This document shows positions 1,142 to 57,411 of a stretch of 64,000 nt of DNA, piece by piece. The DNA lies in NCBI RefSeq assembly GCF_902459465.1, contig NC_047070.1:19406001-19470000 (forward strand), written 5' to 3'. Source of the DNA: Asterias rubens (lineage: Eukaryota). Under the pieces are notes generated by a model that saw nothing but the letters and a program-made list of their open reading frames with translations, was not told the DNA's origin and did not search any database. Each line of letters starts with the position of its first letter. Position 1 is the stretch's first letter. The position numbers and the translations under genes are program-made.

Positions 1142-1186
1142 AATGAAAGGGAACAGACTCTAAGCAGTTCCATATGGTTGACATTG
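1142..1186 (+). CDS. Gene A exon (loop D), NEREQTLSSSIWLTL
   Basis: Acceptor ctacag, donor gtaagt. 45-nt size and sequence match the conserved nAChR DEKNQxLxTNxWL exon. Confidence 0.92.
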
Positions 1187-2302: not shown

Positions 2303-2412
2303 ACTTGGACGGATGATTACTTGACATGGGATCCTGACGACTATGGTGGAGTCTATGTGTTCAAAATCCCCTCGCACGAAATATGGCTTCCTGATATCTA
2401 CTTTTATAACAA
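2303..2412 (+). CDS. Gene A exon (loop A), TWTDDYLTWDPDDYGGVYVFKIPSHEIWLPDIYFYN
   Basis: Acceptor tgtacag, donor gtgaga. Classic 110-nt nAChR exon with WxDxxLxWDPxxYGG and WxPDxxxYN motifs. Confidence 0.95.
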
Positions 2413-9720: not shown

Positions 9721-9923
9721 TGCCGAGCTGCAAACGAGAAACTTTCTTGTCGGTCCAGTGGTCAAGATCTTCTCTAATGGGGGAATCATGTGGGCAGCCC
9801 CGGTCAACTTCAAAGGGTACTGCCTGCTCGATGTTCGCTACTTCCCATTCGACCATCAGCACTGCGATATGAAGTTTGGTCCATGGCAACACAATGGCAA
9901 AGAGATAATCATGGAGGGACACG
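9721..9923 (+). CDS. Gene A exon (loop E, Cys-loop, loop B), ...YCLLDVRYFPFDHQHCDMKFGPWQHNG...
   Basis: Polypyrimidine tract plus attag acceptor, donor gtaata. Cys-x13-Cys loop with FPFD. Overlaps ORF 9758-9964. Confidence 0.96.
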
Positions 9924-10440
9924 GTAATAATAACTCAATTTGTGTATACACGTTTCTTTCTTAGTAGTGCTGTCGATAGAGGGCGCACACTCTATAGAGT
10001 GAACCGGACTGTTGCTAAGATGAGCTCCGTTTATTGTGGCGATCAAGCCGTATCCCGTAATACAGACACAGTGTCACAGGGAAATCTGTCCGCCGGAGAC
10101 ACTGTACCCCTTTATTGCAAATTAACATGTGCTAAAGGAGGATGTGTCAAACAGGGGCGCTATCACAAAAAGTTTATACACAGTTCGCCTTATGTGGGAC
10201 AAAAACATTTTAACGAAGGGTTGTTGTTTGTCGATAGTGGCAGTATTGGAACAAACAAGCAGTTTGCAACCTCAATAAGTAGATGGATGGTTTGTGAGCT
10301 TTGCTTATACTTAATATGATAAAAAGACTGCAGACTGAAATTAATGTTTTTTCTTCTTTTGTTCTCCTTTTTTTTTAACAACAAAGTACGATAATGTAAA
10401 ACAGCTCTTGTGCTGATTGTTGTATCCTGTATAAATATTT

Positions 10441-10471
<31 letters not shown>

Positions 10472-10557: not shown

Positions 10558-10884
10558 GTAGCCAGTCAGTGTTCATGAGTAATGGTGAATGGGACATGAC
10601 AGGCATCAGTACCGTAGATAACCTTGTATATTACCCAGACGATCCAGGGGTCCCCTTTACAGATACAACCTTCACCATCAAGTTCTCAAGACGTTCAGAG
10701 TTCTACGTCTTTAATCTTATGATGCCATCGTGTCTGATTTGCCTCATGGCGGCGCTCGCTTTTCTGCTGCCACCTACGTCACAAGGAAAGGTCAATCTTG
10801 GGGTCACGTTTCTATTGTCGATGACAGTGTTTCTGATGATTGTTGCTGAGTCTATTCCACCGACCAATCAGGTCCCAGTTATCG
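10558..10884 (+). CDS. Gene A exon (loop F/C, M1, M2, M2-M3 linker)
   Basis: Acceptor catcag, donor gtaagt. Encodes SNGEWD...YYPDDPGVPFTD...RR..FYVFNLMMPSCLI...LLPPTSQGKVNLGVTFLLSMTVFLMIVAESIPPT..VPVIG. Confidence 0.96.
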
Positions 10885-19382: not shown

Positions 19383-19942
19383 TTAGACCTGCACAAAAAA
19401 CACGAGGAAGGTTGTGGCTGATCCAATCAAGCACATAAGAAAGAAGAACCTGTCCAAGACAATGGCGACCCTCTTCCACTCTGTCTGCACCCGTCTCGAA
19501 TTCACCTCCACCTCGATGCTGAATGTAATCTTTTGCATCTCCCGTAGCAACGCAAGATAGAGGGCGCGATTCCTATGCAGAGAGTCCTTGTTATCACCTG
19601 AATCATTTTGTCTGTTTTGTTCCGATTCGTCGCCTTTGTTTTCCACGTTACATCCATTCGATACCACTCTTGATCTGGAAGAGTTACCGGTCACCTCAGC
19701 CATTAGGCTCTTTGTCTCCCATGATTTGAGCTCCTGTGCGAGCCTGTCTCCGATGGTTGGACGTCGTTTGGAGCGACTGCTCTCTGATGGTAGCAGTACA
19801 CGACCGATACCATTCAGTATGTACTTCTTGATCCATGGTGGAACAGGTTTGCAGTCAGGGCCTCGGTGGTGCATATTGAGGACTGTTACAGACATCCCGA
19901 TTGAGATTGAGATCAGCACCATCGTGCAGGCAAAGTACTGAC
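19383..19942 (-). CDS. Gene B exon 8 (M3, intracellular loop, M4, stop)
   Basis: Acceptor ttttcag. Encodes GQYFACTMVLISISIGMSVTVLNMHHRGP...EWKRVAIVLDRFFF, ending in TAA. Confidence 0.97.
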
Positions 19943-20261
19943 CTGAAAAAAGCAACACCAAGAAAATACTTGACTTGTATGTTCGTCAGTTACGTTTGAA
20001 GCTTTGCATGGTGTGAAGTGTAGGAACAAGTTAAGTATACATATTAGTTAACTTGCGAGTACGACCATGAAATAAATCTCCTTTCAAGGAAGTGTTGACT
20101 TTGAAAAGAGCCGGTTTGGTGTCGTATAGTATACTCCGCTCGTCTTAAGGAGAAAGCTTGTTCGTCATAGAACGACACTTTTCATGCTTCAAGTTTTACC
20201 ATCATTTTCCTTTAATGTGAACGAGAGAGAACAATGATATGATGTTGATACACAATCTCAC

Positions 20262-20469
20262 CTATAACGGGAACTGTACTCGTGGGTGGCATAGTCTCCG
20301 CCACCAGCAGCAGGAAGACGGTGAGTGACAGTAACACCGTTACACCAAGACTAACTTTCTCTCCAGACTCTGGAGGTAGGAAGAACGTCAACAGCGACAC
20401 CAACGACAAGAACATGCAAGGGATCAGCAGATTGAAGAGATAGTAGAGTGGGCGCCTCTGAAATAAAAC
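20262..20469 (-). CDS. Gene B exon 7 (M1, M2, linker)
   Basis: Acceptor cttgtag, donor gtgaga. Encodes [18 protein letters not shown]...[40 protein letters not shown]. Confidence 0.97.
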
Positions 20470-22187
20470 CTACAAGAAATAAACATGGTTAGTAAAAGTC
20501 TAGCGAAGTCTCGTGCGATATACGGGACCTTGGATGACCTGGTATTGACTATTTGTAATGATGTGGAGGAAACAATGTGCTGTGCGAGATTTGTACATCA
20601 TTACTATTATCAGACTTTCCAAGTAGTTCTCTTTTGTGAAATAAAGTAATTTGTCCGAAAAAGTCAATACCTACAAAACATTAATAGTAATACATATCTT
20701 TGTAAATGATCGTGTCGTTTCCATAATTATACAAGCACTGTCATTTCTTCTACATAACGACACAATACTCTGCCCATACATTCATTTTGTTTCCCATTTG
20801 ATGCAGATGCAAACAAGAACCGACATTCTTAACATCATCATGTCCGCTGGCTTAAACTTTAGACTGATTAAACAGTTCATTTCATTGGTGTCACTTATTG
20901 TTTGTCATGGCTTACAAATGTCAAAAGGTATCCGGCAAGCCTGTTGGTCTATACTGCTGGTGTCTTTGGGGAGTTATTGCCCCGGAGAACCCAAAAGAAA
21001 ACGTGATTGTCCGTATCAACTTGGACGCATTGCTTCTTCAACATAAAAACGATCAGTGAATTATCTTTCTATTTCAATCCTTTGGGAGTGGTTATCATTA
21101 CATCCAAAGCAAGGACGTATACCATAAGACATACCCCAGGCTATGGAAACAAACAGCAGCGTTTAAAAGTTAAATTTAACTTGAGGACAGAAACTGAGTA
21201 TCAGGTAGTCCGCTGTGTATGAGCGATTTTATTTGAAAGACTTGATTTCATTTGGAAGACTTGAAGCAGGAGGTCTGAACCCATTGTGCCTTTAGTGGTA
21301 AACGTGACTTGTATCCGATCATACAAAACCTACTATGGAAGTCTGCATCACGTAGGGCATATACAGTGTAATTATTAGTCATCTCTCTTGTATTTTTAAT
21401 GGCCATTTCTTCTTCCTTCACCTGAAGTCAACTGACAAATTCATAATTGGCTTTTGACTTAATACCAAATAGAAATTAAGTAGCGGTGCACAGAATTAAA
21501 GAATGGCGATAAGCGTGAGTTTGTTTTCTCTATACAGATCTCCGGGTAGTTAGTATTCACTGTGACCCAGCTGTTCGTGTTTTGCTATTCCCTAAACACA
21601 TCTAATATATCGTCATAATGCAAATCTACCTGTCGTTGGGTCCTTAAATGTATTGGAGGCATTTTTAAATAGAGGTAACTGTTGGCCCGTTTAGCCTAAA
21701 TAATTCAGAGCGTCTCGGAACGACTTATTTACACTTAGTTTGACTTAGTTAAACGAGCTGCATTACCTTACGCTTGAATTCAACTACACATGCATAGACC
21801 ATTTAGACTAATAAAGAACAAACTAGGTCCCACCTTCGGCGGTTTTTGCTGAGCGAATGTTGAGGGAGCTACAATTGTGATCCTGGAAGGTTGTAATTTC
21901 ACACTTGATATACTCTCGCTATAAACCTATCAACTTGGTTTTTGAGCTGGGTTGCCGATGGCGTTCGAATAGTAAACAAACAACTCTGATTGGCATATAT
22001 TTTTAATTTTCACACACACCAACACACACCATAATCAATATAAGGCAAAAATTGCTAAAATCATGGTCAATCTGCTTTTAGGACACTAACCCGATTCGAC
22101 AAACTTAAAATAGAACCAGAATGTTGAAGATTCATCGTGACTTTAACTCGTAACAAGTTGATACCCAACCTTAGTCAGTGTACCCAC

Positions 22188-22309
22188 CTCGTACACAACG
22201 TCAGTGTATTGTTTACCAGGGTCGTCTGGGTACTCCATTTTGTTACTGTGCACTGTGACCTCGATCATATCCCACTGGCCATCGCTATTGAAAACAGTTT
22301 CATCGCCTC
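22188..22309 (-). CDS. Gene B exon 6 (loop F/C), GDETVFNSDGQWDMIEVTVHSNKMEYPDDPGKQYTDVVYE
   Basis: Acceptor ttatcag, donor gtgggt. Phases 1 and 0 fit the flanking exons; homologous to gene A SNGEWD...YPDDPG. Absent from the ORF track. Confidence 0.94.
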
Positions 22310-25300
22310 CTGATAAACAATGGTAAAAATAGTAGACATTTTAAAGTTAGCATCTGTACACGTGACTTTCATGATAACTTCAACAATCTTGTCTTTTATG
22401 TTAGAGTTTTAATGTTTTAGTTTTTAAATGGGTTATATTATAAAAGGTTGTTAGCTTCCGAAGCCGTCTTTCCATTCAAATTCTATCATCCGTAAGTCAT
22501 GCCCCCATCGTTTTCTCTGTAATACAAAACGTGTTCAATGCATCAACTGATGGTTATCTGTAAAATGGCAATACAAAAACTGTTGATCATGTTGAAACCG
22601 AATAAATTTTCGAAATGAAAGTTTTTTTGTTTTTTTTAACGTTTAATTTATATTAAAACAATTGTGGTTTAACTGAGATTAAAGGTAAGGGTGCCATGCC
22701 ATGCCTGGGTTAGGGTTTATTTTGATTTACTATTGGAAAGGGGTTATGCTGAAAAGCGACACATTGTGAAGAAATAAAGCCACTCTTTTGGGGGAAGGGT
22801 ACATTCTCAAAGCTATGAGGTTTACATGCATTTATCCTAAGTATTAGGCAGACTTCATTGCAGTACCTACGACTAGTGTAACAATAACCAAATCGTTCTA
22901 AATACAATGTAGCATCTACGAGTACAATTCTACTGATCAAATATTGAAGGTTTTTGTTTCGTCAAGGAATTTGTCGAGCTGCGTGATAGAGTTTGGCTGC
23001 CAACGAAAATAAAAGAAATAAATTACAATATGCTTTTTAATTTCTTTCTTAAGAATATATTATAATCACTAATGTCTCACATGGGAGCAAATAGTGTGAA
23101 TCAAGGAGAGACAGTCACCTATGGGAAACGTGTACTTCATTTTGAACACGAGCTGTTCAGAGATGAATCTACAAGAATGTCTAAGATTCCACTAATAAAT
23201 ACCACAATGATCAGTTTGTACTTGTTTATGCCTCTGAAGAAGGTCCGGTTTAGAATATAAACAAATACATAATTGAAAATATTGGCACAAATACGGAGAA
23301 TTGGATCACACACATTGTAAATAAGAGATTAATCCGATGGTGTGACGTCACACACCGATTTTCATTATACATAGTTTACTAATTGAAAGTCTTAAATTGA
23401 ATCAAGAAACATGAAAAGGTGAACCTCATCTTAAATATATAAGAGTATACATGGAATTGTTATAAATGAAAGCTGCAGCTGATAATATGAAATCATGACT
23501 TGATCATCAGATTGATAGCTGAACGCAATGTGGATTCTAAGAGTGATGGGTAATCAAACATTTTACACTTCAAACAACTGCAAATACTACGCACTGTATG
23601 AGGGTGCATTCAGACACGGTACTAAAGTTGGTTTAACTCATGGTTCAACTCGATTGAGTTCATAAAACGAGAACAAATGTTACACCCCGCATCCAACAAT
23701 AAATACAGCAATTTTTTTACTATATATTTAACAAAACTAGCGTTGTGTGAAACTGATTGTTTTTATATTTAAAGGAAAAAATGTCATATAAGATTTGTGC
23801 TTGTATCTTAAAAATCCAATAAATTGGCATTTTGGAATTAATATGAATTTTGTTTCAATCTATGTCAGCAAGCATTGTATACTTCAACAACATGAAAACC
23901 AAAAAACCCAAAACGTTTCTCTCTTAATTCAATTGTATTCATGAATGTGACAAATGTTAAGCAAAATCAGCCAAACACTTGTCACTGAATGCTAAGTTAT
24001 TGTGTTATTAACATAAATTTCAATTGACAGAATATCCAGAGGAATGCCTTGCGGGGTATCCGTGTAAATGCGTGCTGACAACGTAAATTGAAACACTTTG
24101 CCCCTCAGAAAACAATTTTGTTTTCAAACGAGGGCGAAGCATAATGAAATTGTGTGTAACATGTAACTGAAATGATAACTAAAAACGCAACCCCCTCCCG
24201 AGCAAACACCTGTGGGCTTTTAATGAAGATTTCATATCTAACGATCGGGGGCTCCGGATTAACTAGTGTATCGAGTGAGACATAATAGAAAGCCAGACGT
24301 AATTCCAGGTTTATTTTGTGCACCATTTTGATAATCGCAGATTGCCTGAAGCTAATCTTTTGTGCTACAAGAACGATATGCTTAGGTAAATTGACATTCA
24401 ATTTTAACAACTGAGTTTCATTAGTATGGCATTGCCTAAAGGCATTGCGTTGAACTGGTACATCAATGAGTGTTTGCACAAAATAGTCACATGCCTTGTC
24501 ACTATTTCACTTCGGCTGAATTCACTCCCGATCTCGTTGGCTATTAAAATAGGTGTCTTTTCTTAAGAATTGTGAATTTAAACTTTCAATGCTGCAATAA
24601 CGCAGACTGAATTACAATAAAATTAAAACAAATTTATTTTGGATGACGGGTTGCTTGTTTTAAAATTTTATTCTTTGCTTACCGTTAGAGGTACCAAGTT
24701 AACATCACTGAATCCGGCTTATAAACGCATGTGTGTTTTTACCTTTTTGTTCAGATTTCATGGAAATACAATTCCCAACAATTATTTGATAGTAAGCTGT
24801 GCTTAATTGGAATATAGTGAGAGTATGAAACCTAGTCATTGAAACTATTTGATAACCAGCTGAGTCGAATCTGATACATATGGATGGTTTCAGGCAAAGA
24901 TTGGAATGGATGTTGATGAAGTAGGTCTAGGCATTCTTAGAATTGAGTAGGCTGATTCTAAGCTGTCAAGCTTCATTTCTACAAGCTGTGTGTTGTATCC
25001 TCTTTCATGGTCAGATGGATTAATACAACCCAGGCTTAGTTAACATTCCAAAACTCTAATTTTTTGCTTCATTGGGTTAAGAAAATAAAACAAATAATTA
25101 TTATCCCATATGCCTAAAAAATACCAGAACCAAAAGAAAAACAAAGTAAAAGAAATGAATGAATGCAAAACCATTACCAAGCAACTATTGAATTTAGTTG
25201 TTAGTTTTTATCAATCTGCATCAAACATTCGACTTAAGGAAACAACATGCTTCATTGTTAATACCATGGACACATTGCTTTAACATTGTTGAAATTTAAC

Positions 25301-25478
25301 CAACATGTAAAAGTCAAACCATTTATTTAATTAATGCAATAATCGCTAGTGAAGTTATTTGTCTCTATCAAATAACTGTTATATTATTTTGATTTGTTGA
25401 ATATATATATATTTTATTATTATGGTTAATATTATTATTTGTTTTCCCTTAGGGGACACGGTGTTTTCTATTCGTGGT

Positions 25479-25849
25479 TTAAAGGCAGTGGACAATATTG
25501 GTAATTACTCAAAATAATTATTAGCTTAAAACCTTACTTGGTAACGAGTAATGGGTAGAAGTTGATAGTAAAAAACATTGTGAGAACGGCTCCCTCTGAA
25601 GTAACGTAGTTTTCGAGAAAGAAGTCTTTTTCCGAGACTTTGATTTCGCGAGCTCAGAATTAGAAGTTGAGGTCTCGAAATCAAGCATCTGAAAGCACAC
25701 AACTCCGTGTCACAAGGGTGTGTTTTCTTTCAGTATTATCACGCAACTTCCGACGACCGAATGAGCTCAAATTTTCACAGGTTTGTTATTTTACACCAAG
25801 TGATAAGACTGGTCTTTGACGATTACAAAAAGCGTCCAAGTGTCTTTAA
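25479..25849 (+). mobile_element. MITE family 1 copy
   Basis: TTAA-AGGCAGTGGAC left TIR; degraded right TIR ending gtctttaa. Confidence 0.9.
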
Positions 25850-28098
25850 ATCAGAGTCTCTCATTTTATGATAATCAGAATCTGGCGTCAACGTTCTCCC
25901 TTACTATACTTAGCATGCAGCGGAGGAGCACATATTTAATGCTTTTAAAGTTCTACAACCACACAACAAAGTGCTTGCAGCTCAGCATTTGAATCGAAGC
26001 TTATTTTGGGTATTATAATTTCAATTATTTATGAAAAAACACAAATAAAAGGGTAAAATAAATAATTCTCAAGCCGGCAGTTTATTAACTAGTTTATCGT
26101 TAATGCGCAGCAAGGATGGGAAAGGGTATGTTTTATAGATGTTCGATGGACTAATAAATTGTACCTTTACTAAGTTCAACTTGCTAATGAATGAGTTATG
26201 GATGTCTAATGGATGGATAACATATGTTTTAGGTTGTATCATAAATCTTGTACAAGTAATATGCAGCTACAAGAAAGATGTTGCAGTATGTTGCTGCTTT
26301 AATGTCTCGTAAATTTAGGCTATGTTTCAGCTACAATGTATGGTGGCAAATATGAAAATAAATAGTGTTGGGGATAAATTTATAAAAATAATGTAATAGA
26401 AAAACAATCTATAATGGTTTAACAATGAAACACCAGCATTCGTGACTAAAAATCTGAAAAAGAGAAGGGCTGAGTTCAAAATTGAAATATAACAAATATA
26501 AACTGGATTATGATAAGTATTCAGTTGAAATGTTAGTAATAACTCTAAAACCAAGACAAGAACCGATATAGATAATCAATGTACTTTTAATGACTGAATG
26601 CAATTTGGTTGTTTGAAAGCAAACAAAAACCCCAAATCTACCGATTAATAACTTTACTTAGAATGGAAAAACCATTAAAATCAATGAATTTTAAAGTCGT
26701 GAAAGCCAGTGATTACAAAACGAAAATGCTATAACGATGGACAAAGAACCAAAGCATGTAGGAAAATGAAGAATAAGTTGGCAAAGATGTATTTTGGATT
26801 CGGGGAGAATGGGAATAGGGAATGGCAAGCAGCGGTGGGTTATATGAGCAGGATTGGAGTAATGCTTAAAGGCGTTCTGGACAACAGAACAAGAAAGTGG
26901 GAGATAAAGCGACTGGCAATTGGAATGGTAAAATCTGTGTTATGATATAGGGCCTTACCGCCTTCAGATGTAGTGGTGTGGTCATCTTTATCTGAATGGG
27001 CGAACCGACATAATATTACACATTACTTCAATAGTGTTGCCTTTAAAGTAAACATACTCAAGTAAGCAATCAGTTGATCAGGAAATTGTGGTTCTCAAAA
27101 AAAAATAATGATCCGCGTGTATTGCCATGTTTCATTTCATGTTTGAATTGTAAGAAGAAAAGAACATCCGAAGCACTTTTCTTTTGAAATGTTTTTGATA
27201 ACTGTTAAAACACAAAATAAGAGGGACAAAACATCAAACAGATCAGAAAGACCACCAGGTCACGTGTGAGGTGACGTCATCGAATAAGGATCTCGCAAGA
27301 CACAAACATGTACTGACTATACACTTGGGATCTTCTTAGTTGAAACGTGCAGCGTAACACTACGGGGTAATAAAGTAAGTAAACTCAACAGCTATTTCAT
27401 TTTCCCTTAACAAAAATAGCAACTATTTATAGTGCAATGTTTGCAGGCACGTGCATTGAGTGCAGACAAACTAAGGGTATTTTAAGCGCCACGGTGGATC
27501 CATTAGGAACAAAATACAGTTTGGCCATTATTGTCACTTACTTTGCATATTCAGAAGCATGATTAATATGTACATAAATTATGCAAATAAAGGCAGTTCC
27601 TGCGAAACACCGTATTCGATCCCGCTCCTCATTGTTTGAAGATAAGTCTTTTGAATGTCAACCTCTGACCTTCGTTTGTTATCAAGGTCCAATTTGATAA
27701 TAACTTTGAATTCAAAACAGTTCGCTCCCGATATTCAATCTCTGCAGTGACGTCATTGCAAAAGATTGATTGAAAACCTAAAGTTGAAGTACCATGTATG
27801 GTACTACCCTACATCAAGTATTCATAGTAACGTAATAAATGATTAATGATTATTGCAAATAATTGTTTGTAATAGCATGGTGGGAGTACGAGGCCTTGCG
27901 GTTATAGATGAAAGGCAGACACCTCATAGAACTTGTAATGTTAAAAGAAATTGGGGTAATGTGTCTACATATGGATGACCATGCATTACCTAAACATTGC
28001 TACTATCCATGTTCATGCGATATTCGAATTATTCCCTTAATTAATGTCTCTTATAAATGAACGTCTTAGTGGGGATAATACGAAAGTGTTCCTCTTAC

Positions 28099-28298
28099 CA
28101 GCCCCAACGACGACAACTTCTGTTGCATCATGCTGCCACAAACCAAACTTGAGTGTACACGTTTGCTTATCAAAGGGAAATGTGGTGATGTCAATTTTAC
28201 AGTAGGTAGTGAAGATTTGGGGGCAACCCCAATTGATAGACCCGTCGTAACTGATGACTGCTGTCTGACCCTTCAGAAAATTGGCGTATTTGTCGGCA
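28099..28298 (-). CDS. Gene B exon 5 (Cys-loop), ...YCKIDITTFPFDKQTCTLKFGLWQHD...
   Basis: Acceptor cttcgcag, donor gtaaga. Cys-x13-Cys with FPFD; 200 nt, phases 2 and 1. Absent from the ORF track. Confidence 0.96.
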
Positions 28299-28685
28299 CT
28301 GCGAAGAAAAACAAGAAGAGGATTATTAATATTTCAAAATTATTAGATACTCTGTCTTGATTTTAGTAAACCAATATGTATAACTATTTTCTTAAGCTGC
28401 GCCACGCATCTGAGATCTTGTCTTTGTACCACACACATTCAAGTATCTTCTCAAAACTTATCTTATGTCGCAGAGTTTCAAGGACTAATTGTGTTGTGTC
28501 TGTTTTCTTTCGTTTCATTTTTCGGCTTTACTACGCCTTGAACACCCAGTCTTTATTATTATTATTATTATTTCATTTTATCACAGCATGCAAAAGAAAG
28601 ATCTCATTTTCCTTTGTGCCGGTAACTCCTCGAGTCGGGCTACGTCCCGTAACCTTAGATCTCAAGGGTCTTTCTCAGGATCCTC

Positions 28686-28740
28686 GCTATTATTATTATT
28701 ATTATTATTATTATCATTATTATTATTATTATTATTTATT
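28686..28740. repeat. (TAT)n microsatellite
   Basis: About 17 ATT/TAT units with one interruption. Confidence 0.95.
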
Positions 28741-30473
28741 AGTTATAATCAATTTTAAGACATTGCTCATGATTGTCGAGTGGTTGCCTATAGATTCCTA
28801 ACTGAAGTGAGACTCCCTGATTGACTACAGCCAAGCGAAATACAAGAATTTCATGTTCTGTGTCTCTGAGGATAGCAGCGGGCCACCCATTGCCGCCCTT
28901 AACAAGCCCTCAGCTGCCTCTCGAGTCTTGAGAAACCTACGCCAGTCGATGATTTCATCGACAGCATCTCATATCAGTTTAAATATTAACTTGGCGTTTG
29001 AGCGTACTTGTCCACGTAGTAGGATCAATTATCATAATCTGAGTGGCAATCAAATCCTCTGGATTCACCTGCAGACATTGCTTGATATAGTTCAACTACA
29101 GGTGCTAGATGAACAAAGATATCCCTATAATAACACGCTTCATATCAGAGCTAGATATATTCGGCTAGACGCAGAACCGTTTGAATGAGCCGCACTGATT
29201 ATTTATAACTACATAGTTCCTCACACTCTTCTACCTTTCTGTATTCCAATTTGACGCTGTTCTTGTTAGGGTCAAAGAATTACTAAACCCATATACAAAC
29301 AAGTCATTAATAAAGTAATTCAAGCAGTACTTAGGTACCACTAGAGTCGAGTAATGCGGTAATTCATAACAATTCCTCGGCGTCTATTTAGAATCCACAG
29401 AGCCAACGAATCGGAATTCAAGCTTCCAATAATCGCATGACAGACATCCAGACACTAATGGTAAAAAACACTCCCTACCGGAACCCAACATCCCTAATAA
29501 CAATCATCGTGACGTGGGACTCTGCGTCACAGGAACCAGCCTATATGGGTCAACAATGCCTCGCTTTGAATTATACACCGCTCTTTTACAAGTGTGTTCA
29601 TGCAAGTTCAATGAGAGACTTCCTGACTGCTGTAAGAGTAAGTCATTGCAAAAGAACAAATACTTCCAAACTGTTAAAAAAAAATGGAGTATTGATTAAA
29701 CATCAGATGTTGATATCTGCCCAGGTGTATGTCCTTAATGAAATTCTTATCTCTGATTCAACTTGCCGTAGTGTCATTGATTAAAGTAACTGTGTACATC
29801 ACCAAGGTGGTGCCTGTCGCAGAAATGGCACCAATAGTATAAAGGATTTCACATAAATGCAAAATGTACAAGTATAAACCTTAACATTAGTCATAAGTAA
29901 TTGAACATACACAGAGTAAATTGTTGATCAATATTTGCTGATATGGATGATGTTCTATACATTAGCAATCATTTTGATCAAACAATGTTCATTCATTCAT
30001 TGGAATAATCACACACACTATCGGCATTCTGGTTCCTGCCGTATATTATTTGACATTAATCTATGAATAATGCATTCTTGAAACGCAGTAATTGCATTCT
30101 GGCTACTATTGACAATTGCTGCAATGTAATTGTACCTGAGTGGCAATCACAGACGAGACAGGTACCCAATTAAGCAGAAATCCTCAAGAAATCTGACGTC
30201 AACGTCATTATGAAGATTCCGGTATGGAGGTGTTTTGCTCATAACAGAAGCAAATGGATCAAATAACATACCTAATTAGCGTCTGAATTCATTAGCACGT
30301 TGTTTTGCTCATAACCAATCTTATAATTTCTTAAAGAATGTTTTAATTACTCTTTTATCACAGTCATTTAATTTGTTTTATTGCTCATTTCAAGTATAAC
30401 CTTGTTCTCATGTGTTGATACAAATGAGAAGAAGGTTGAAATGAGAACAACTAATTAAAACGAATTGACGTTA

Positions 30474-30826
30474 TTAAAGACACTGGACACTATTGGTAAC
30501 TGTCAAAGACCAGCCTTCTCACTTGTTGTATCTCAACAAAATACTTATCCTGTGAAAATTGAGAGTTGCGACATAACTATTAAAGAAAAACACCCTTGTC
30601 ACACGAAGTTGTGTGCTTTCAGATGCTTGATTTCGAGATCTCATATTCAAAATCTGAAGTCTCGAAATAAAATTCGTCGAATATTACTTCTTTCTCGAAA
30701 ACTAAGTCACTTCGTTTCTCACAATGTTTTATACCATCAACCTCTCCCCATTACTCGTTACCAAGTGAGGTTTTATGCTAATAATTATTTTGAGTAATTA
30801 CCAATATAGTGTCCACTGCCTTTCAA
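30474..30826 (-). mobile_element. MITE family 1 copy
   Basis: ttaaagacactggacactattggtaac ... accaatatagtgtccactgccttt. Confidence 0.9.
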
Positions 30827-33264
30827 ATGTTGTCTTTCTCATTTTGGTATTAGTTTATTAGTAGCATCTGTTCCTGGACTGTAAGAGGAGAACATATGCG
30901 TGCCTACATTTGTACCTTTTAACGGTTAGCATAGAAACTTTAGACTAGTCTAGAAATGCATTTGACCGTTACATGACTGTAATATTCCATTCTTCCTAAA
31001 ACTGATACCCCGTCAATAGCACGCAACTTGTTCATACTATAGCAGTTTGTCCCAATCACAACTGATAGATCCAAAAATGTTTTATAGACATATTTCAGCA
31101 GATCACTTCCTGATCTGAAATTGTCCCCGTGGGCCAAATAATAATTCCCATCCCTGAATTATGTTTTAATCTTAGCTACTTGTACCTGAGAACAAAACAT
31201 TGATTCCGGTTTACAGATATATTATTTTCTCCACAGGCGGTAGATAACTGTAATACACTTCCTGTATAATACGTGTAGGTTAATTATAAAACGAATTAAT
31301 CAAAAAGCGATTGGTTTGTCTGATAACCATTTCATACAGGAACGATAGTTTCAAAAAAGTGTTCGAAAGATCAGAACACAAAGCAACCTGATATTCTAAA
31401 AGAACAGTTAGTCGAACGAGGCAGTGAGGCATACAATTTATACCTTTCGGTATCATGTCTGGAATGGTTTTGGGGAATCAAAATACGAAGTATTAAGATG
31501 AATCCTAAAATCAACAATGAATTATTAATGTAAGTACAACAAAAAATTGTTAGGATTGCTAGACCGACAAATTTCAGAAATGAGTTAAGGTAATTGGCAC
31601 CGTAAAAGCAAGTCCATTTATATTGGAGATCGGCAATCGGCGTATCTCTGGGGAGAGTGTGCATGCACTTTATTATCATTTTCTGGCGGCAGATACTACC
31701 CTTGCAATAAAAACATAAATCGCTTCAAAATCATCACGATTATTGAAAATTTCATCGGCGGCGTTATCTCTAACTCCCGGTTTTCACCTACAGCAAAAAC
31801 AACAGTGAACTGATAATAACATATGAGGACAATGACTCGTACATGAATAAAATTAGTACACTTTACACCAACATCAAGTTGTCACTCCAGAGTGTCTTAT
31901 AATGGTTGACGCAACTGTCAAGATACCCTGTATATTAGTAAAGATCAAACGCATGCTAATATTTCACTTTTATCGACTTTCACATCTTTGTTAAGGGTGG
32001 AACTCTTACAAAAGGTTAATGGTACAAGAGTTACCTGTAGTTGATTTTACTCGTGTGAACATATTTTAATGGAAATACGACAAGCTCAAAGCAATTAAAA
32101 TTCAGCTTGCACTTAGTGCCTACCTCATTGCCTACCGAGACTGCATTTCGGTTAAGACAGTACAGTCATATAGATTGTATAAATCTGTTTGGAGCGTTTT
32201 ATGACTGTTGAATTTGGCTCAATGTTTATACGTCAATAACTAATTCTTAAAATGTTTGTTTGTGTGTTACCAAGCTAACGTTTGATAAAAATACTGTTAG
32301 CTTAAATGGTCCAAGACACTTTAAAATGAGACTTTATAAATAAAACCATAATATCAGCATTCTAATGACGCATAAGTTGCCGTATCTGAAAAGAGGAGCC
32401 CACGTACTTGTTTTACTGAAACACAACGCCGGTATATAGAGCTGAACTCTCCAGTGGTATATTGTTTACTATAATGATATTTCCATTTGCATTGGAGTAT
32501 GAATGCCTATAGACTCACATAAAACTAGTATCCTTCTATTCTGTCTCTATATTCTAAACGTGACCAACATCTGATGATCAGATATTGACAAGCACGAAGC
32601 AAGTTACAGCCTTCGGACTCTAAAGTATGTCCCACCGAAGTGTTAACTTCAAGGAGCTCTGAGCTCTGCTCATTTAAGTGTCACTACCTCGACAACAACC
32701 TCATGGGGAAACAACAACTTTATGAAGAACATAAAGGAACTAGAGAAATGTAACACCTCGACTAATACAGTCATACTTTTAAAACTAAGTCCAATGCGAT
32801 CAAACTGACTATAGATCACGTTCAGAGATACGGTATAAAAGGTTTTCTCGGTCAATTTCGGCAAATGAACAGCCAATTTAACCATAAAGCTATTATATTT
32901 TGCGCGAAATCGAATGCTACTACAAATGGTAATTCGATTTCGTTCTATGATTAGCCAAATGAAATGTTGGGCCATCCGATTTAACAAACAATAATTCAAT
33001 TTAGCAATTCATCAAATCAGCATTCAAATTCGCAGATGCTTCTTAAGGCGTGTGTGTCACGAAAAAGAATGGAGATACGCTAAATTGAACAGAGTGCTAA
33101 AGGAATTTGACTCGACTCAAAACGAAATTGAATGGCCGAATTTTGAATTTGAAACGCTGTAACAACTGGAGAGGTAAAACAGCGTTAAATCGAACGCACG
33201 AACATTTTTATTGCCCCTTTGCCGAGTTTGACCGAGAAAACCTGTATAATAAAAGCGTTTATAC

Positions 33265-33374
33265 TTATTATAAAGCGTGACGTCGGGCATCCATATCGTC
33301 TCAGAAGGAACTTTGATGTTCTTAAGGTTGTTATAATCCTTAGGGTCCCAGGTAAGATACTCATCTTGCCACTT
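33265..33374 (-). CDS. Gene B exon 4 (loop A), KWQDEYLTWDPKDYNNLKNIKVPSETIWMPDVTLYN
   Basis: Acceptor ctgcag, donor gtataa. 110-nt conserved nAChR exon. Confidence 0.95.
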
Positions 33375-33750
33375 CTGCAGAAACAAAAGAGCAATTCAAA
33401 TGACAGACTTGTTGAATTAGTGTGTTGAAATACCGATTATGGAATGCACAACATAATGTGTTAAACAATTAATAATTCAATTTAAAATAGAAATGACAGA
33501 TATACTAGAATCTGTGTTGTCATTATTTCGTTCTGGTTAAGGATGTAGTCGTTCTTTTTGCCATTTGTTTTCACAATGTTGTTGACAATATCACAGTAAC
33601 AACATAAGTGTACGACATTGTTGAGTGTAGGTAGAAATCATTTGAATCCTGACTTCATCTATTGTTAAAATAAAATGAGTATAATTTTTTTTTTCATTTC
33701 TTTTTTAAAGCCACAGTAAATATTTGACATGTGGGTTTGTGATTCACTTA

Positions 33751-33894
33751 TAGAATACTAGCATATAGGCCTACTAGAATACTAGCATATAGGCCTACTA
33801 GAATACTAGCATATAGGCCTACTAGAATACTAGCATATAGGCCTACTAGAATACTAGCATATAGGCCTACTAGAATACTAGCATATAGGCCTAC
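33751..33894. repeat. 24-bp tandem repeat, 6 perfect copies (TAGAATACTAGCATATAGGCCTAC)
   Basis: Exact 24-bp period. Each unit contains the palindrome TAGGCCTA. Confidence 0.97.
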
Positions 33895-35745
33895 TTTAAA
33901 GTACTGCGACATTTTCTACGGTTCCGAGAAAAGTGCAAAAGTTCATCGAGCCAATGTCGTTTTGACTTGGCGCATTGGATGACAATAATGGTTTAGCCAA
34001 CTGTGGGCTTCGTGTTATTAACAGGCTTTGAATACCAGACTGTAAGATGAAAATGTGACTCCTTCATGCCTCATTGACGGGCACCTTTCATGAAACTTCA
34101 GGAGAACATTTGTAATACTGTTACTTTATTTGAGTATCAAACGATAACAAACACCATGACGATTCATAAGCTGTATCAAATTTGTCATCGCTATTGGTCC
34201 CTGTTAGGCTAATGATTACCGCAAAGAGAGTTAAACGTGTTAACATTATGCATTTTCGTTATTAATTTTGAAAGAAAAGTATTTCCCAAGGTGACTTGCA
34301 TTTGTACATTTAAAAAAAAAAAGAAGATTTTTATTAACATCTATAAATTATGTTGAAGTTCAATTATTACCCATTAACCGTAATTTTGTTTATTTAACCG
34401 CTTTTAGATAGCAATCCCTTAAATATACACGTGAGAGAAAACAATGTTCCCTTGTGTTTGAAACGCGGGTATCTTAAATTTGATAAATTAACACTTAATG
34501 TTATTTCCAACAGTTTAATTATAGTATGTTTTTGAAAAGCAGTTGAGTAGGCTACGCCTATGTTAGTCTCTTGCTCCACTTATGACGCGTGCGTTCATCG
34601 AGACTTTGAAAGGAGCGCCAAAGGCTTAACGACCGATGTATAATGCTTTGAAACTTGGTAATCAGTGCCATCGGTAGTCCGCAGACAATGTTGAAACAGC
34701 TGCATGGTTATAAAGACGGCAGGTCACTAGACGGCTGTTACCTGGTTGATTTGTTGTTAGCTTGTATCTCTCTCATGCTAACTGGAATCTCTTTTTGAGC
34801 ATCTCCAGACGGCTGTTATATGTACGATTTGATGCTAGTGCCTCTGTCTGCCCGAGAACTGTAGTCTCAACTTGTTACTTTATATCCCAACAGGTGAAAT
34901 CAATATGTTTTCTTCTTAAGAGAGAGATTGCTTTTGACTGTTTAAAGTAACAGAGAAAAATTACTCAGGTGGGAGCCAATCGAAGAAGGGGGGCAACGAT
35001 GTCAAATAACCGACTGAAAACCGTATATTTTTGGAAGCAATTACACCTGAAAGCGAGCTCGGGTTTCAAGATAATTTTCCAAATGTTTTGCAATCGTATT
35101 CGATGAAGCATCTTTGAGAAATGACGAGAAAAACTTAATAAATATTGAGCGAAGACCATCATCTGTCGTCGGGTTCTTAAACCCCTTTGAGCAAAATACT
35201 CCTGCACAACAATTATCTGTATATAACTTAAAGATTAACGAACTCCTTCAACCTGGTTGAATCTAGCCCCTTTTCATCATGAATCGAAGACTGAGGGGGC
35301 AGGTGTTGCCCACTAGGCCCACTCTGTTCCCCACCAAGCCCTAAATGGGTAAGGTAGAGAACCTTTCAGCATAGGGGATAATGGTGCTGAATCTTGGCTC
35401 GCATAATGCTGACATGATTATTATCGCATGGAAATAAACCTGAACCAAATCTGATGGTTTATTGACGTTTGCCCTTATACTGCCCATCTGGTCATATTTC
35501 AGGCAAGTGTTGAAGTTTCTAAACAAGTTTAACATGTCACATTATAATAAATCTTTAAAATAATAAAGAGTAACATTTCCTGGAAGGAGTATTTTAACCC
35601 ACCGCTTTCAGCTAATATTTGTTCCTCATGTCTAGATTAAACACGGCTATGTAATTGATGTTGGTGTCAGAATGATGGAACAAATCAACAGTATGTTTGT
35701 TCTCTTGATTTGTATATACTTAACAGAACATCACATGAAGCTTAC

Positions 35746-35790
35746 CAAAGTCAGCCATACATTTGTCTTCAATGTCTGTTTCCGCTCATC
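35746..35790 (-). CDS. Gene B exon 3 (loop D), DERKQTLKTNVWLTL
   Basis: Acceptor ttttcag, donor gtaagc. 45 nt; 9 of 15 residues identical to the gene A equivalent. Confidence 0.94.
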
Positions 35791-36180
35791 CTGAAAAACA
35801 AAATCACAAATGATTAATTATAGAAACAGGTGAGACAATTCCCTCGATGTATCAGATGTCATCTCTAACAGAGATATGCGTCAGTTCGACATATAATAAA
35901 TATATTTATTCTGTTTCAATTCTGTTCCCAAGTTACTCTCGTTAATTATGAATGAGGTTACTAAACCCACGTATGTATCTTAATGAATTCGCCATTTGGG
36001 ACAATCCTATAGGGACTACACGGGTTCACCTTTAATACGTGATATAAATAAACAGTGTTGAACATGAAAGTCTAACATTCAACTGGAATACAACGTGGGT
36101 ATGGAAAGGTTATGGTTGGGGGTGATGTTCACTTGTCAAACCGACACCAGACCTGGAAATACTTATAATTGATAATCACT

Positions 36181-36540
36181 TTAAAGGGTCTATGTAACTT
36201 TTGTAGGACAAAAAACACAATGTCTACAGATTTACACTAAACTTACACAGTTTGAAGATAATGATAGTAGAAAGCTTCCATGAAAATATTACGTGCTTAG
36301 GTGCTGTAGTTTTGGGGAAATGAGTAAAACAATGTCATGAAAATAATTTTCGTCTTATGAGACGAAAATTATTTTAATCATCTACAAACATATTTTCATG
36401 ACATTGTTTTACTCATTTCTCAAAAATTACAGCACCTCAGTAAGTAATATTTGAAGGGAAGCTTTCTACTATCATTATCTTCAAACCCTGTAAGTTTAAT
36501 GTTCATGGACATTTTGAAAAAGTACCCACAAATCCTTTAA
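36181..36540. mobile_element. MITE family 2 copy
   Basis: TTAA at both ends (ttaaagggtctatgtaac...aatcctttaa); colinear with 7299-7662. Confidence 0.9.
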
Positions 36541-37565
36541 ATTTGAAAAGCATTCAAGGCACTAATCAGGTATCTCGTCGTCACATTAGTCCTTCAATCA
36601 GTCCTTCTAGAGAAACATTATTCAGGTTGTACCCAAATTAACGAACCGTTTACGACTGGATATTGTCGGATATAATGATTTGACACTTATTAATAATATT
36701 TAATTTCGTATTCCTATGCACAGCATATCAAGGTTGATGTGCAGAAGTCTACAATCTGATGTGTTATTATTGAATATGAAATATTTTGGATCATCACAAA
36801 AATATAGCTAGCTATTAAATTCTGGACACAACTGGGCATGTAATTTTCATACACAACAAAAACAAAATTGGACCCGAAAACTTTGTTAAAGCAAACCAGA
36901 ACTGCACCAATTAATAACATGTAAAGTGAGAATGGGTGTAAAATGCAATTTGTTTTTTGTCACTCCGCCCACATATTGTTAACGTTATACTAGATGTTTG
37001 ACATTTCGCCCCCTTTTGCATAAACATATGTAATTAACGTAGCTCCCAATCCCAGGAGGGTGTCACATTACGTGTAAGGAATTTGATTGTTCATATATGA
37101 ATATATGGATTATCAACAAAATCCAGATCAAATATTTTGAAATTTTCTCTGAAATAAGACAAACCTATGGAATATTTTGCGAGAGAGGAAGTTATTTTAT
37201 TTTATTCTTTTCTTCTATTTAAAGAAGACTTACATCAATTCGGAGATGCTGGATTTATGTCCTTGTTACCCACTGTAATACGCAAATATTATACTACGTG
37301 ATATATTCGTTTTGCATGAATTAATGCCGTAAATTGCTTCATGACACCTGACTTAAATGTATTCGTATTCAGAACTGTATATCCTCCCCATGAGTTACTG
37401 AGTCTTTAACGGCATAAAGTCTGCCATTAAACACACTATTCAGACAGATTGCTCATCTTGGAATGTTAGAAATTCAAACCGAGCCATTGTTTGTGTCTCC
37501 TTGTTTTATATTCTGACAACAAATTGTATGGTGATGAGATATATACGTACAAACAAAATGAAAGG

Positions 37566-37933
37566 TTAAAGACAATGGACACTATTGGTAATTGTCAAAG
37601 ACCAGTCTTCTCGCTTGGTGTATCTCAACATATGCATCAAATAACAAACATGTGAAGATATGACCTCAATCGGTTGTCGAAGTTGCGAGATAATAATGAA
37701 AGAAGAAAAACCCCACTGTCACACGACGTTGTGTGCTTTCCGTATGCTTGATTTCGAGACCTCAAACTCTAAATCTGAGGTCTCTAAATCAAATTGAAAA
37801 CTACGTCACTTCAGAGGGAGCCATTTCTCACAATGTTTTATAATATTCACCTCTCCACATTACTCGTGACCAAGTATGCTTTTTAGGCTAGTAATTGTTT
37901 TTAGTAGTTACCAATAGTGTCCACTGCCTTTAA
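37566..37933 (-). mobile_element. MITE family 1 copy
   Basis: ttaaagacaatggacactattggtaatt ... ttaccaatagtgtccactgcctttaa. Confidence 0.92.
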
Positions 37934-51612: not shown

Positions 51613-52080
51613 TTCTGTATGCAGGAACACAGCGGTTTAATACAAAATTCACTAATTACTCACCTATAGGTCCGTACAGCTATAAATCTCTGTCATGCTG
51701 TAAAGGCATTGTACGCAATAAGTCTAATGAAATATAATGTATTCATTACATGGAAACAGAGACCAGACCTTTTGTTTCACATTGACATTTTATTGCCGTA
51801 GTTATGTTTTTATAGCGGCAATAAATAACTGGAATCCACATTTTCCTTTTCTATTTTTAGTGATGTGATTTTGCCTGCTGGACAATTATGTTTGTGGTAA
51901 AATTATCTTCGTTAACAACATATGTTTCCTCTATGGACTACAATTTCAAGAATACAAATCAAAAGTCAATGCCTCTGAAACAAAAAGTATTTTTGGACCG
52001 CTTTATTGTTTCAGTTGTTGTCCACTCACCAAGCCGCAATTAATTTACCTGATATAAATAGAATGCAATCAGGACATGTA

Positions 52081-52466
52081 TTAAAGGCAGTGGACACTAT
52101 TGGTAATTACTCAAAAAAATTATTAGCGTAAAACCTTTCTTGGTGACGAGTAATAGGGAGAGGTTGATGGTATAAAACATTGTGAAAAATGGCTCCCTCG
52201 GAAGTGCCATAGTTTTCGAGAAAGAAGTAATTTTCTACGAATTTGATTTCGAGACCTCAAGTTTAGAACTTGAGGTCTCGAAATCAACCATCTAAACGCA
52301 CACAACTTCGTGTGACGAGGGTATTTTTTCTTTCATTATCAATCCGCAAGTTCGATGACCGATTGAGCTCAAAATTTCACAGGTTTGTTATTTTAGGCAT
52401 ATGTTGAGATACACCAACTGTGAAGGCCAGTCTTTGACAATTACCAATAGTGTCCACTGTCTTTAA
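52081..52466 (+). mobile_element. MITE family 1 copy (intact, reference-like)
   Basis: TTAA at both ends; TIR AGGCAGTGGACACTATTGGTAATT. Perfect 21-bp-arm hairpin at 52243-52287. Confidence 0.95.
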
Positions 52467-52705
52467 ACCCTTGTTTATGGATTATGTGCAGTATATTATT
52501 ATTCGATGCAGTTGCTGGTTGTTGACTGTCTGTATAAGGTCTAGCAATCATGGATTAACACAGATTGTAACAGACTAGAGTGAACCCCCGTTGGCAACTA
52601 TAGTGTTTCAATTTCTTGTCTCAGTCAGCACTAACGCGACAAGTAAAAAATGAATCTCGTGCAGCAAATAATGGTCATAACTAGTACAGTTCATTTACAG
52701 CGATG

Positions 52706-53090
52706 CTAAAGACATTGGACACTATTGGTTATTGTCAAAGACCAGTCTCCCCACTTGGTGTATCTCAATATGTGCATAAAATAACAAACCTGTGAAAATT
52801 TGAGCTCATTATGTCGTCGAGGTTGCGAGATAATAATGAAAGAAAAAACACTCTGGTCACACGAAGTTGTGTGCTTTCAGATGCTTGATTTCGAGACCTC
52901 AAATTCCAAGTTTAAGGTCTCGAAATCAAACTCGTGGAAAATTACTTCTTTCTCCAAAACTACGTTACTTCAGAGGGAGCCGTTTCTCGCAATGTTTTAT
53001 ACTATCAACAGCTCCCATTACTCGCTACCAATAAAGGTGTTATGCTAATAATTATTTTGAGTAATTACCAATAATGTCCACTGCCTTTAA
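52706..53090 (-). mobile_element. MITE family 1 copy
   Basis: ctaaagacattggacactattgg ... atgtccactgcctttaa; inverted relative to the 52081 copy, 240 bp away. Confidence 0.93.
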
Positions 53091-55088: not shown

Positions 55089-55458
55089 TTAAAGCCATTG
55101 GACCCTTTCGGTTCAGAAAAAAAAAAGTTCACAGATTTACAAATAACTTACAGGGTTTACAGAAGGCAATGGTGAAAGACTTCTCTTGAAATATTATTCC
55201 ATGAAATGCTTTACTTTTTGAGAAAACAGCAAAACAATATAAATTCTCGTTAACGAAAATTACGGATTTATTTTAAACACATGTCATGACACGGCGAAAC
55301 GCGCGGAAACAAGGGTGGGTTTTTCCGTTGTTTTCTCCCGACTCCGATGACCGATTGAGCCTAAATTTTCACAGGTTTGTTATTTGATATAGAAGTTGTG
55401 GTACACAAAGTGTGGGCCTTGGACAACACTGTTTACCGAAAGGGTCCAATGGCTTTAA
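55089..55458 (+). mobile_element. MITE family 4 (chimeric: family-2-like left arm, family-1-like right arm)
   Basis: Perfect 24-bp inverted ends including TTAA: ttaaagccattggaccctttcggt / accgaaagggtccaatggctttaa. Confidence 0.9.
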
Positions 55459-55636
55459 GCAAGATATTGAGGCACTACATACTAGAAACAATACCTTAAT
55501 TCCTACACTTATATCTTTTTGTTTACAAATAATCTAATGTTCCCTAGCTCTTTAAAGTCCTTGCGATTGTGAAATTTCCAGTTAACTTTGCGTATAAGAT
55601 GTTTCTTTTATTTGTCAATGAAGCATATCGTTACAT

Positions 55637-55800
55637 TGGCATCATGGTTGGCTCATCAGGTTTTTTTTCCCTGCCGTAACTTCCTTGAACCCCGGTTCGA
55701 ATCCCTGTTCAGACCTGTGGAGCCTTATATGGATTGGTTTTCAGTCCCTGCTTGCTTGTGTTTACCACATTTGGGATTTTCACAATCCATCGTCAACTTG
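55637..55800 (+). mobile_element. tRNA-derived SINE remnant
   Basis: A-box-like tggcatcatgg (55637) and B-box ggttcgaatcc (55694-55704), followed by a non-tRNA body (ggattggttttcagtccctgc). No cloverleaf. Confidence 0.5.
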
Positions 55801-56330
55801 CCTCCGCTCTTGTAGGTAGTAATTAACATTGATATAAAGACACCATAGGATAGATCCTTTGTAAGTTTTTGACATCAAAATTATCAAAAATATTCACGTA
55901 GGCTACCTGATTGTTTATTAATTACTTGTAGAAATTATTCAAGTACTCCTGGGACTTAAAATGAACCCTGTGTGTGTTGTTAATGATGGAGTTCGGCAAA
56001 CTAACGACCCCTCATCTGAATAAAGGCTACGGATCAAATCAAGCATTAGTATTTTTACGACTCAAGAAAAAAAGAAACAATTGTATGGGATGGGGGATCG
56101 ATTAGTACTGGCCAGCGTTTTGCTATGACCACATGATAAATGAAGAATACGTGCGGACATGGGTCAATGGGCTGTGTATAATTGCATATGGGAGGTTATG
56201 AAGCCAATGCATATCAATTGTCTTTGATTATTGATAAAGCCATCCTTACGTTTAGTCTGGGTTTTTGTTCTCGTACTATGATGTTTGTATTTCTTGAAGC
56301 AGAATAAGTCTGCCCATAATTCCCCAGTTA

Positions 56331-57372: not shown

Positions 57373-57411
57373 GCCTGACGTTTCGACCCTAGCAGAGTCT
57401 TTCTCGAAGGC
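57373..57411 (-). ncRNA. Minimal type-I hammerhead ribozyme-like motif
   Basis: The - strand reads GCCU-UCGAGAA-A-GACUC-UGCUA-GGGUC-GAAAC-GUC-AGGC: stem I GCCU/AGGC, stem II GACUC/GGGUC, GAAA core, GUC cleavage triplet. Confidence 0.5.

Follow-up and report, generated by a model that had tools for sequence, protein, structure and literature searches.

We analysed a 64,000-nucleotide stretch of the genome of the starfish Asterias rubens (contig NC_047070.1, positions 19,406,001 to 19,470,000; hereafter the window), which carries a Cys-loop receptor gene, here called gene A. Translation of window 10632-10664 (+) gave the loop C sequence YPDDPGVPFTD, as the initial annotation had read it, and translation of the reverse strand of this segment gave nothing meaningful. 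The Asp-Asp of this loop (D216-D217) stands in the place of the vicinal Cys-Cys of alpha-type nicotinic subunits. The alpha/non-alpha rule, by which Cys-Cys marks an agonist-binding subunit, underlies the naming and interpretation of nicotinic receptor genes. Gene A was expressed and conserved, and the clade to which it belongs is an old receptor family of echinoderms and hemichordates, uncharacterised before. We lean towards the view that its product acts as a subunit of a heteromeric nicotinic-type cation channel with an Asp-x loop C, whose agonist is most likely acetylcholine-like.

The gene model was derived by exact-substring mapping, in which residues 70-494 of the annotated protein P0155 were encoded in the window with zero differences (Table 1). 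NCBI names this protein 'neuronal acetylcholine receptor subunit alpha-10-like' (Asterias rubens). The exon at 1142-1186 is the first of gene A within the window, and the exons for residues 1-69 lie upstream of it. The window contains no N, has a G+C content of 34-46%, and is organised as short exons in long introns. Both receptor domains, Neur_chan_LBD (PF02931) and Neur_chan_memb (PF02932), were recognised by Pfam on the gene A exons, and the Cys-loop (C155...C169) has the Cys-x13-Cys signature with YFPFD. The aromatic box is formed by Y119, W176, Y214 and F222, which are equivalent to Y93, W149, Y190 and Y198, respectively. All the residues picked out in the initial annotation, namely the loop A Tyr, the loop B Trp, the loop D Trp, the Y190 equivalent and a Phe at the Y198 equivalent, were present in the gene A exons. 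The best solved-structure match of the loop C exon was human alpha7 (E 7e-22), followed by muscle alpha1. A search of this exon against 1.84 billion representative proteins returned 932 matches at E<=1e-10, the best with 70-71% identity, and the named relatives used below were gathered by word-based searches starting from such matches.

The expression of gene A was evaluated with the contigs of four RNA-type runs, two from the window species and two from a relative, which were compared with 9000-12800. Spliced contigs of 2.3-2.9 kb used the loop C exon in all four runs, that is, in two closely related species; use of this exon had been named as a test by the initial annotation. Single contigs spanned three gene A exons and the 3' untranslated region (UTR), skipping 9923-10557 and 10884-11283 at GT..AG boundaries, and the junction from exon 9721-9925 to 10557/8 was present in the four runs. 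Upstream, contigs joined the 3' end of exon 2303-2412 to 9721, as read from loose contig ends. The 3' UTR reached at least about 12800, with contigs covering 11283-12800. The transcripts of the relative differed mainly at silent and 3'-UTR sites, and its only change within the loop C motif was silent, in the Val codon at 10652. A pseudogene or an unused exon was ruled out, since the frame is intact, the product equals the annotated protein and spliced RNA contigs use the exon. Apart from these transcripts, two stretches of a gene A intron (10069-10100 and 10155-10189, about 32 nt each) matched very abundant RNA contigs with an assembler depth of up to 3392. The matching contigs run on into unrelated sequence, and the two stretches are most likely pieces of a dispersed repeat transcribed elsewhere.

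The position of the Asp-Asp was determined with MAFFT on two sets of full-length homologues, of 153 and 235 sequences, in which D216-D217 share their columns with the Cys-Cys present in every alpha-type sequence (149/149). A HMMER pairwise alignment to alpha7 moved the gap by one residue and put Asp-Pro under Cys-Cys, because the alpha7 loop is one residue shorter. This placement was set aside, as the multiple alignments include Cys-Cys loops of the same length, such as that of the octocoral protein P0092 (Dendronephthya), YPCCPNTPYAD versus YPDDPGVPYTD. The spacing of the gene A loop is presumably also that of muscle alpha1, as the initial annotation had stated. A direct replacement of Cys-Cys by Asp-Asp in an otherwise unchanged loop is the simplest reading of these alignments. 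An AlphaFold model of the gene A product, built on a 78-sequence alignment, had a predicted local distance difference test score (pLDDT) of 87 and showed the beta-sandwich, M1-M4 and the MA helix. In this model, the strands 200-213 and 221-233 are connected by the turn 214-220, and this turn, YPDDPGV, caps the hairpin of loop C (pLDDT about 96). The best Foldseek matches of the model were human alpha7 and Torpedo/human alpha1, with TM-scores by target of 0.84-0.89. By its domains and signature loop, the gene A product is a Cys-loop receptor subunit, probably of the nicotinic/5-HT3 cationic branch.

The motif Y-P-D-x-P was found in 65 proteins among those fetched, exclusively from echinoderms (crinoids, brittle stars, sea stars, sea urchins and sea cucumbers) and hemichordates (Saccoglossus, Ptychodera and Glandiceps), and this recurrence in 65 homologues ruled out a chance motif. 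In a first maximum likelihood tree of 86 proteins, the Y-P-D-x-P proteins lay on one side of a branch with a Shimodaira-Hasegawa-like approximate likelihood ratio test (SH-aLRT) support of 99. In a second tree of 119 proteins, from which the loop C columns were removed, the 65 proteins and two derived variants (FTLMPPIPY of a brittle star and IYDGDDPIAF of a sea urchin) formed one clade, again with an SH-aLRT of 99. The search and tree proposed in the initial annotation have thereby yielded a single supported clade of ambulacrarian proteins. Its nearest outgroups were ambulacrarian as well, namely an unusual Ptychodera protein and a Glandiceps subunit of the Cys-Cys type (support 98). Vertebrate alpha7, alpha9 and alpha10, the Cys-Cys types of cnidarians, molluscs and arthropods, and heteromeric types of the unc-63/beta-like kind fell outside it, in trees drawn from a homologue sample that was seeded by family members and contained neither vertebrate alpha1-6/beta subunits nor the DopC channels discussed below. 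Because the family is one clade with ambulacrarian Cys-Cys outgroups, Cys-Cys was probably lost once, in an ambulacrarian ancestor that had it. The Cys-Cys-less protein P0132 (FYDSLPGVPY) was rejected as a clade member, as its closest relatives were coral Cys-Cys subunits, which points to an independent loss.

The clade contains at least four old subgroups, A to D, whose loops C read YPD[D/T/S]PG[V/I]PY/F-TD, E-YPD[D/A]PGK, Y-Q-I-YPDDP-E and YPD[A/S/T]PG..YYD, respectively. Gene A has a single orthologue in each of the five echinoderm classes, to which it is 45-77% identical, and 12/12 of these sequences read YPDDP. In its five co-orthologues from hemichordates, the second position is Thr or Ser, and hemichordates have many paralogues within the clade. 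A literature search found no paper describing the Y-P-D-x-P-G loop or testing proteins of the clade. In addition, several isoforms were seen for the Amphiura orthologue of gene A, and an ENA contig product of 106 aa (P0003), nearest to the brittle-star orthologues, combines the pore PPQSQGKVNLG with HTGPYDNETGPPNDATF instead of YPDDPG in loop C. P0003 could represent an alternative exon or a paralogue without the motif.

To evaluate the constraint on the agonist site, residues were counted in the 65 family members against the 149 Cys-Cys types. The first Asp, at the C192 equivalent, was invariant (65/65), and the second position, at the C193 equivalent, varied among Asp (31), Ala (19), Ser (5), Thr (5) and His (3), Ala being the residue found in gene B orthologues from sea urchin and sea cucumber. 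The Pro before the first Asp, the Pro after the second position and the Gly that follows were kept in 61/65, 60/65 and 50/65, respectively. The equivalents of Y93, W149 and Y190 were each present in 65/65, that of Y198 was Tyr in 54 and Phe in 11, and the loop D Trp (W55 equivalent) was found in 62/62. Moreover, the Cys-loop cysteines, the FPFD Asp, the first pre-M1 Arg, both M2-M3 prolines, the 9' Leu and the 13' Val were each found in 65/65, the K145 equivalent in 56/65, the D200 equivalent in 55/65 and the 20' Glu in 59/65. The suggestion of the initial annotation that an aromatic box is capped by two acidic residues held for the box, which is kept, and for the first Asp; the second acidic residue is a feature of fewer than half of the proteins.

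The aromatic box, the scaffold of loop C and the residues of the gating machinery have been kept perfectly in echinoderms and hemichordates alike, which argues for a principal face that works as an agonist site for a small cation and for a channel with the usual gating. We propose that the vicinal disulfide was replaced once, in the common ancestor of the clade, by Asp-x within a rigid Pro-Asp-x-Pro-Gly turn, and that strong constraint persisted on the remainder of the agonist site and on the gating machinery. Loop C would still close over its agonist, a small cation bound through cation-pi contacts, in a site made of the equivalents of Y93, W149, Y190 and Y198 and of W55 from the adjacent subunit. 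The invariant first Asp lies where, in alpha subunits and acetylcholine-binding proteins, the disulfide touches the agonist, and it may stabilise the turn and provide a negative charge or potential at the mouth of the pocket. Parsimony would favour acetylcholine, or a molecule closely related to it such as choline, as the most likely agonist, which is the most tentative step of the proposal.

Alternatively, the Asp loop C could re-tune the box to a cationic ligand other than acetylcholine, for instance betaine, a monoamine or a further primary or secondary amine, or could make it a metal-modulated site; the clade would then be a new ambulacrarian family of ionotropic transmitter receptors. We regard this as a serious alternative, though unlikely. 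The first Asp is invariant although the disulfide has been lost, and in other Cys-loop receptors a primary amine often has a carboxylate as its partner. The clade also has pocket changes of its own, with loop B P-W-Q-H versus S-W-T-Y in the Cys-Cys types, Thr at the alpha7 Q57 position and Ala or Gly at the alpha7 L119 position. Among the signature columns, a search for a clade-specific basic residue on the complementary face that could pair with the Asp gave none that stood out; K105 stands in place of a common Arg and T83 in place of Arg or Gln. On the other hand, the aromatic box is exactly of the acetylcholine type, and the second Asp is freely swapped for Ala, Ser, Thr or His. A narrower form of this explanation, in which the clade is a deuterostome-invertebrate ionotropic family for a non-acetylcholine transmitter and the invariant Asp pairs with a primary or secondary amine, for example a monoamine, is likewise unlikely. 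If true, echinoderms and hemichordates would have a fast excitatory transmitter system unknown in chordates and independent of the protostome DopC channels.

The DopC channels provide a precedent for such a change of ligand, as these alpha9/alpha10-like receptors are gated by dopamine and not by acetylcholine (10.1101/2025.04.02.646353). The channels described are those of molluscs, annelids, nematodes and arthropods, without mention of an orthologue from an ambulacrarian (10.1101/2025.04.02.646353). Like the clade, they are nicotinic relatives with a conserved aromatic box, on a scaffold able to change its ligand. They differ from the gene A product by published description, in that they retain YxCC (10.1101/2025.10.31.685654). 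The loss of Cys-Cys is therefore neither needed for nor diagnostic of a change of ligand, and because DopC keeps YxCC yet is gated by dopamine, the ligand is not readable from the loop C motif in either direction. Furthermore, Chen et al. (2023, PMC10120082) described an 'Ambulacraria-specific' receptor group, a strongly expanded ambulacrarian-only branch beside typical nicotinic-like receptors, and reported that in HEK293 cells acetylcholine at 10 uM evoked Ca2+ signals with Hl-07243 and not with three others. An acetylcholine-responsive member argues for an acetylcholine-like agonist and against a re-tuned ligand to the extent that this group corresponds to the clade, a match made by description only, as an ambulacrarian-only branch; loop C is not mentioned in that paper. 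The paper describes a tandem array of such genes in Holothuria. By contrast, our protein searches found three Holothuria leucospilota clade members (P0160, P0275 and P0356), of A, B and D type, whose loci show the A/B pair or a lone gene and no tandem array.

The gene A product was compared with the established classes of subunits. It resembles alpha7 and alpha9/alpha10 in that these include its best sequence and structure matches, and in that the Cys-loop, the aromatic box, the 9' Leu, the 13' Val and the 20' Glu are common to the starfish family. The succession of a 45-nt and a 110-nt exon is presumably also that of the vertebrate alpha7, alpha9 and alpha10 genes. It differs from them in having P-D-D-P-G instead of the vicinal Cys-Cys, P-W-Q-H instead of S-W-T-Y in loop B and, as a trait of the gene A group, Gln at -2' and Gly at -1' where they have Gly-Glu, and in belonging to a separate ambulacrarian clade. 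As it has no vicinal Cys, the product is by definition not an alpha subunit, and NCBI names such as 'alpha-10-like' are automatic. The beta2 and beta4 subunits likewise have no Cys-Cys, and carry a Pro and an acidic residue at the tip of loop C (beta2 RRNENPDDSTYVD, beta4 RRTVNPQDPSYVD; both read from the chains of solved structures). Because human beta2 reads N-P-D-D at this tip and beta4 N-P-Q-D, a Pro-Asp-Asp tip has a precedent in a non-alpha subunit. However, the loop C of beta2/beta4 is three residues shorter (37 residues from GEW to the start of M1 versus 40 in alpha4/alpha7) and has no Tyr at the Y190 position, which is Tyr in 65/65 family members. Judged by its sequence, the gene A product is unlike a classical beta-type subunit, with a full-length loop C, the Y190 equivalent and four principal-face aromatics, which agrees with the earlier view that it is neither a normal alpha nor a normal beta.

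This comparison bears on another explanation, in which the gene A product is an accessory non-alpha subunit whose principal face binds nothing and which supplies the complementary face and the pore to Cys-Cys alphas, as beta2 does in alpha4beta2. The loop C tips of beta2 and beta4, the NCBI name of gene B ('beta-2-like'), the conserved loop D Trp, the presence of Cys-Cys-type subunits in ambulacrarian genomes and a gene A group without the -1' Glu, as in some accessory subunits, are in agreement with it. We nevertheless consider it improbable, since the Y190 and Y198 equivalents, the full-length loop C and the K145/D200 gating pair are kept at 85-100% in echinoderms and hemichordates, a degree of conservation that would not be expected of an unused principal face. 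The clade also did not group with the heteromeric alpha/beta-type representatives (unc-63, Strigamia alpha1, beta-like) in the tree.

Cephalopod chemotactile receptors are nicotinic-derived and without the acetylcholine-type Cys-Cys, and they form lineage-specific expansions with a remodelled hydrophobic pocket. By analogy with them, the initial annotation had suggested a chemosensory role, in the tube feet or other sensory tissue. The clade shares the nicotinic origin and the absence of Cys-Cys, and hemichordates have many of its paralogues. In contrast to the chemotactile receptors, gene A is an old, slowly evolving one-to-one orthologue in the five echinoderm classes, at the identities given above, with its aromatic box and gating residues intact and no fast lineage-specific expansion. 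A chemosensory role is disfavoured by this single-copy, slow evolution, and we consider it very improbable.

The preferred reading, a heteromeric channel with an acetylcholine-like agonist, was further evaluated at the pore and at the neighbouring genes. At the mouth of M2 in gene A (window 10770-10850, +; LPPTSQGKVNLG), -2' Gln and -1' Gly replace Gly-Glu. The sequence SQGK was found in 15/15 gene A-group proteins listed (10 echinoderm and 5 hemichordate) and Gly in the -1' column in 17/65 family members, and the family members outside the gene A group read SGEK. The other cation-type features of M2 in gene A, the 9' Leu, the 13' Val and the 20' Glu, are present. A pore of this composition would be compatible with a cation channel solely in heteromers. 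Muscle gamma/epsilon and 5-HT3B are also without the -1' Glu. Heteromers are suggested because the gene A group has no -1' Glu and because the linkage of A with two paralogues, B and C, is conserved; the gene A group would most likely assemble with family members that have the -1' Glu, for which the linked B and C are obvious candidates.

Gene B, which encodes P0189 (NCBI name 'beta-2-like isoform X1', Asterias rubens), is a convergent paralogue in the same window, and its exons have Pfam matches to the receptor domains and a pore with the standard SGEK. Genes A and B are arranged tail-to-tail, with their stop codons 7.5 kb apart. Holothuria leucospilota has the same layout, in which 8.4 kb separate the A orthologue from a downstream B orthologue of opposite strand. 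In Acanthaster (DF978546.1, 10001-34447), a C-type gene whose loop C, YQIYPDDPEV, carries an insert of 3 residues is followed on its own strand, after 5.3 kb, by a gene for a 511-aa receptor, and the length and contig of the latter match the B orthologue P0188. By analogy, the C-type counterpart of the window species would lie just past window position 64000. In several other species, A, B and C proteins are encoded on one contig or chromosome. The last exon of gene B was present in the RNA runs X2, X3 and X4, which contain sequences of both genes.

Several points weigh against the preferred reading. No nicotinic-family subunit is known to bind acetylcholine on a principal face without Cys-Cys, and a binding pocket that contains carboxylates is more typically that of a receptor for primary amines than of one for quaternary ammonium ligands. 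The trees were 'quick' searches, and their deep nodes were weakly supported. Run X1 contained the gene A transcript and none of the sampled words from the last exon of gene B, in assembled contigs that show presence and not absence; co-expression of A and B may therefore not be obligatory. In addition, the Holothuria receptors of PMC10120082 may belong to a group other than the clade.

The rule that Cys-Cys marks the agonist-binding subunit is broken uniformly by this whole echinoderm and hemichordate clade, which has no disulfide, an invariant Asp and a perfectly kept aromatic box. If the clade binds acetylcholine without the disulfide, the view of what a nicotinic site requires would change; if it binds another ligand, it would represent a new family of transmitter-gated channels in the sister group of chordates. 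Genes of the clade are labelled alpha-9, alpha-10, alpha-7, beta-2 or beta-3 'like' in the databases, and such labels mislead the annotation-based inference of cholinergic circuitry. A survey of the sea urchin embryo relies on subunit names of this kind (PMC12467107), and the sea urchin neuronal markers 'Chrna9_4' and 'Nacha6' (PMC8683087) are not mappable to the clade without their sequences.

Table 1. Exons and loop C motifs of the two receptor genes in the window
Feature	Position	Strand	Remarks
Gene A exon, 45 nt, NEREQTLSSSIWLTL, with loop D Trp (SSIWLTL)	1142..1186	+	Identical to P0155 residues 70-84; bordered by AG and GTAAGT
Gene A exon, 110 nt, TWTDDYLTWDPDDYGG...IYFYN, with loop A Tyr (IYFYNN)	2303..2412	+	Exact match to P0155 residues 85-120; Pfam Neur_chan_LBD, E 5e-11
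Gene A exon with loop E, Cys-loop (C155...C169) and loop B (KFGPWQH)	9721..9925	+	Exact match to P0155 residues 122-189; Pfam Neur_chan_LBD, E 5e-17
Gene A exon with loop C, M1 and M2	10558..10884	+	Open frame; AG/GT boundaries; both junctions in RNA contigs
Gene A loop C motif YPDDPGVPFTD	10632..10664	+	Asp-Asp codons GAC GAT at 10638-10643
Gene A last exon with M3, cytoplasmic loop, M4 and stop codon	11284..11876	+	Exact match to P0155 residues 298-494; Pfam Neur_chan_memb
Gene B, convergent paralogue of gene A	19383..62707	-	P0189, 499 aa; all residues exact in the window (62707 to 19386)
Gene B exons to codon resolution, first part	62707-62633, 45698-45546, 35790-35746, 33374-33267, 28297-28100	-	
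Gene B exons to codon resolution, rest	26992-26957, 22310-22185, 20469-20260, 19943-19386	-	
Gene B loop C YPDDPGKQYTD (EYPDDPGKQYTD)	22232-22200	-	Read from the sequence and aligned; same Y-P-D-D-P-G signature as gene A

A micro-exon of gene B of about 36 nt (26957-26992, -) encodes an acidic, Thr-rich insert, DKDDHTTTSEGG, between loops B and F. It may be alternatively spliced, because the protein is named 'isoform X1'.

The window also contains repeats and low-complexity tracts. Intron 1 of gene B holds a 23-bp minisatellite (47610-48518) of about 39 copies with a 79% match and higher-order periods of 140 and 280 bp, which yields spurious open reading frames of up to 341 aa on the minus strand and a local GC skew. 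In the 7.5-kb spacer between genes A and B, a C/A-rich low-complexity tract with CAC/CAT/CCA runs (15440-15900) had a GC skew of -0.31. Interspersed repeat copies in both orientations, with 80-88% identity, were found at 1-270, 1686-1753 and 16097-16287. Furthermore, an intron of gene A carries a 130-nt inverted-repeat pair with a 46-nt spacer (7335-7640), which resembles a miniature inverted-repeat transposable element.

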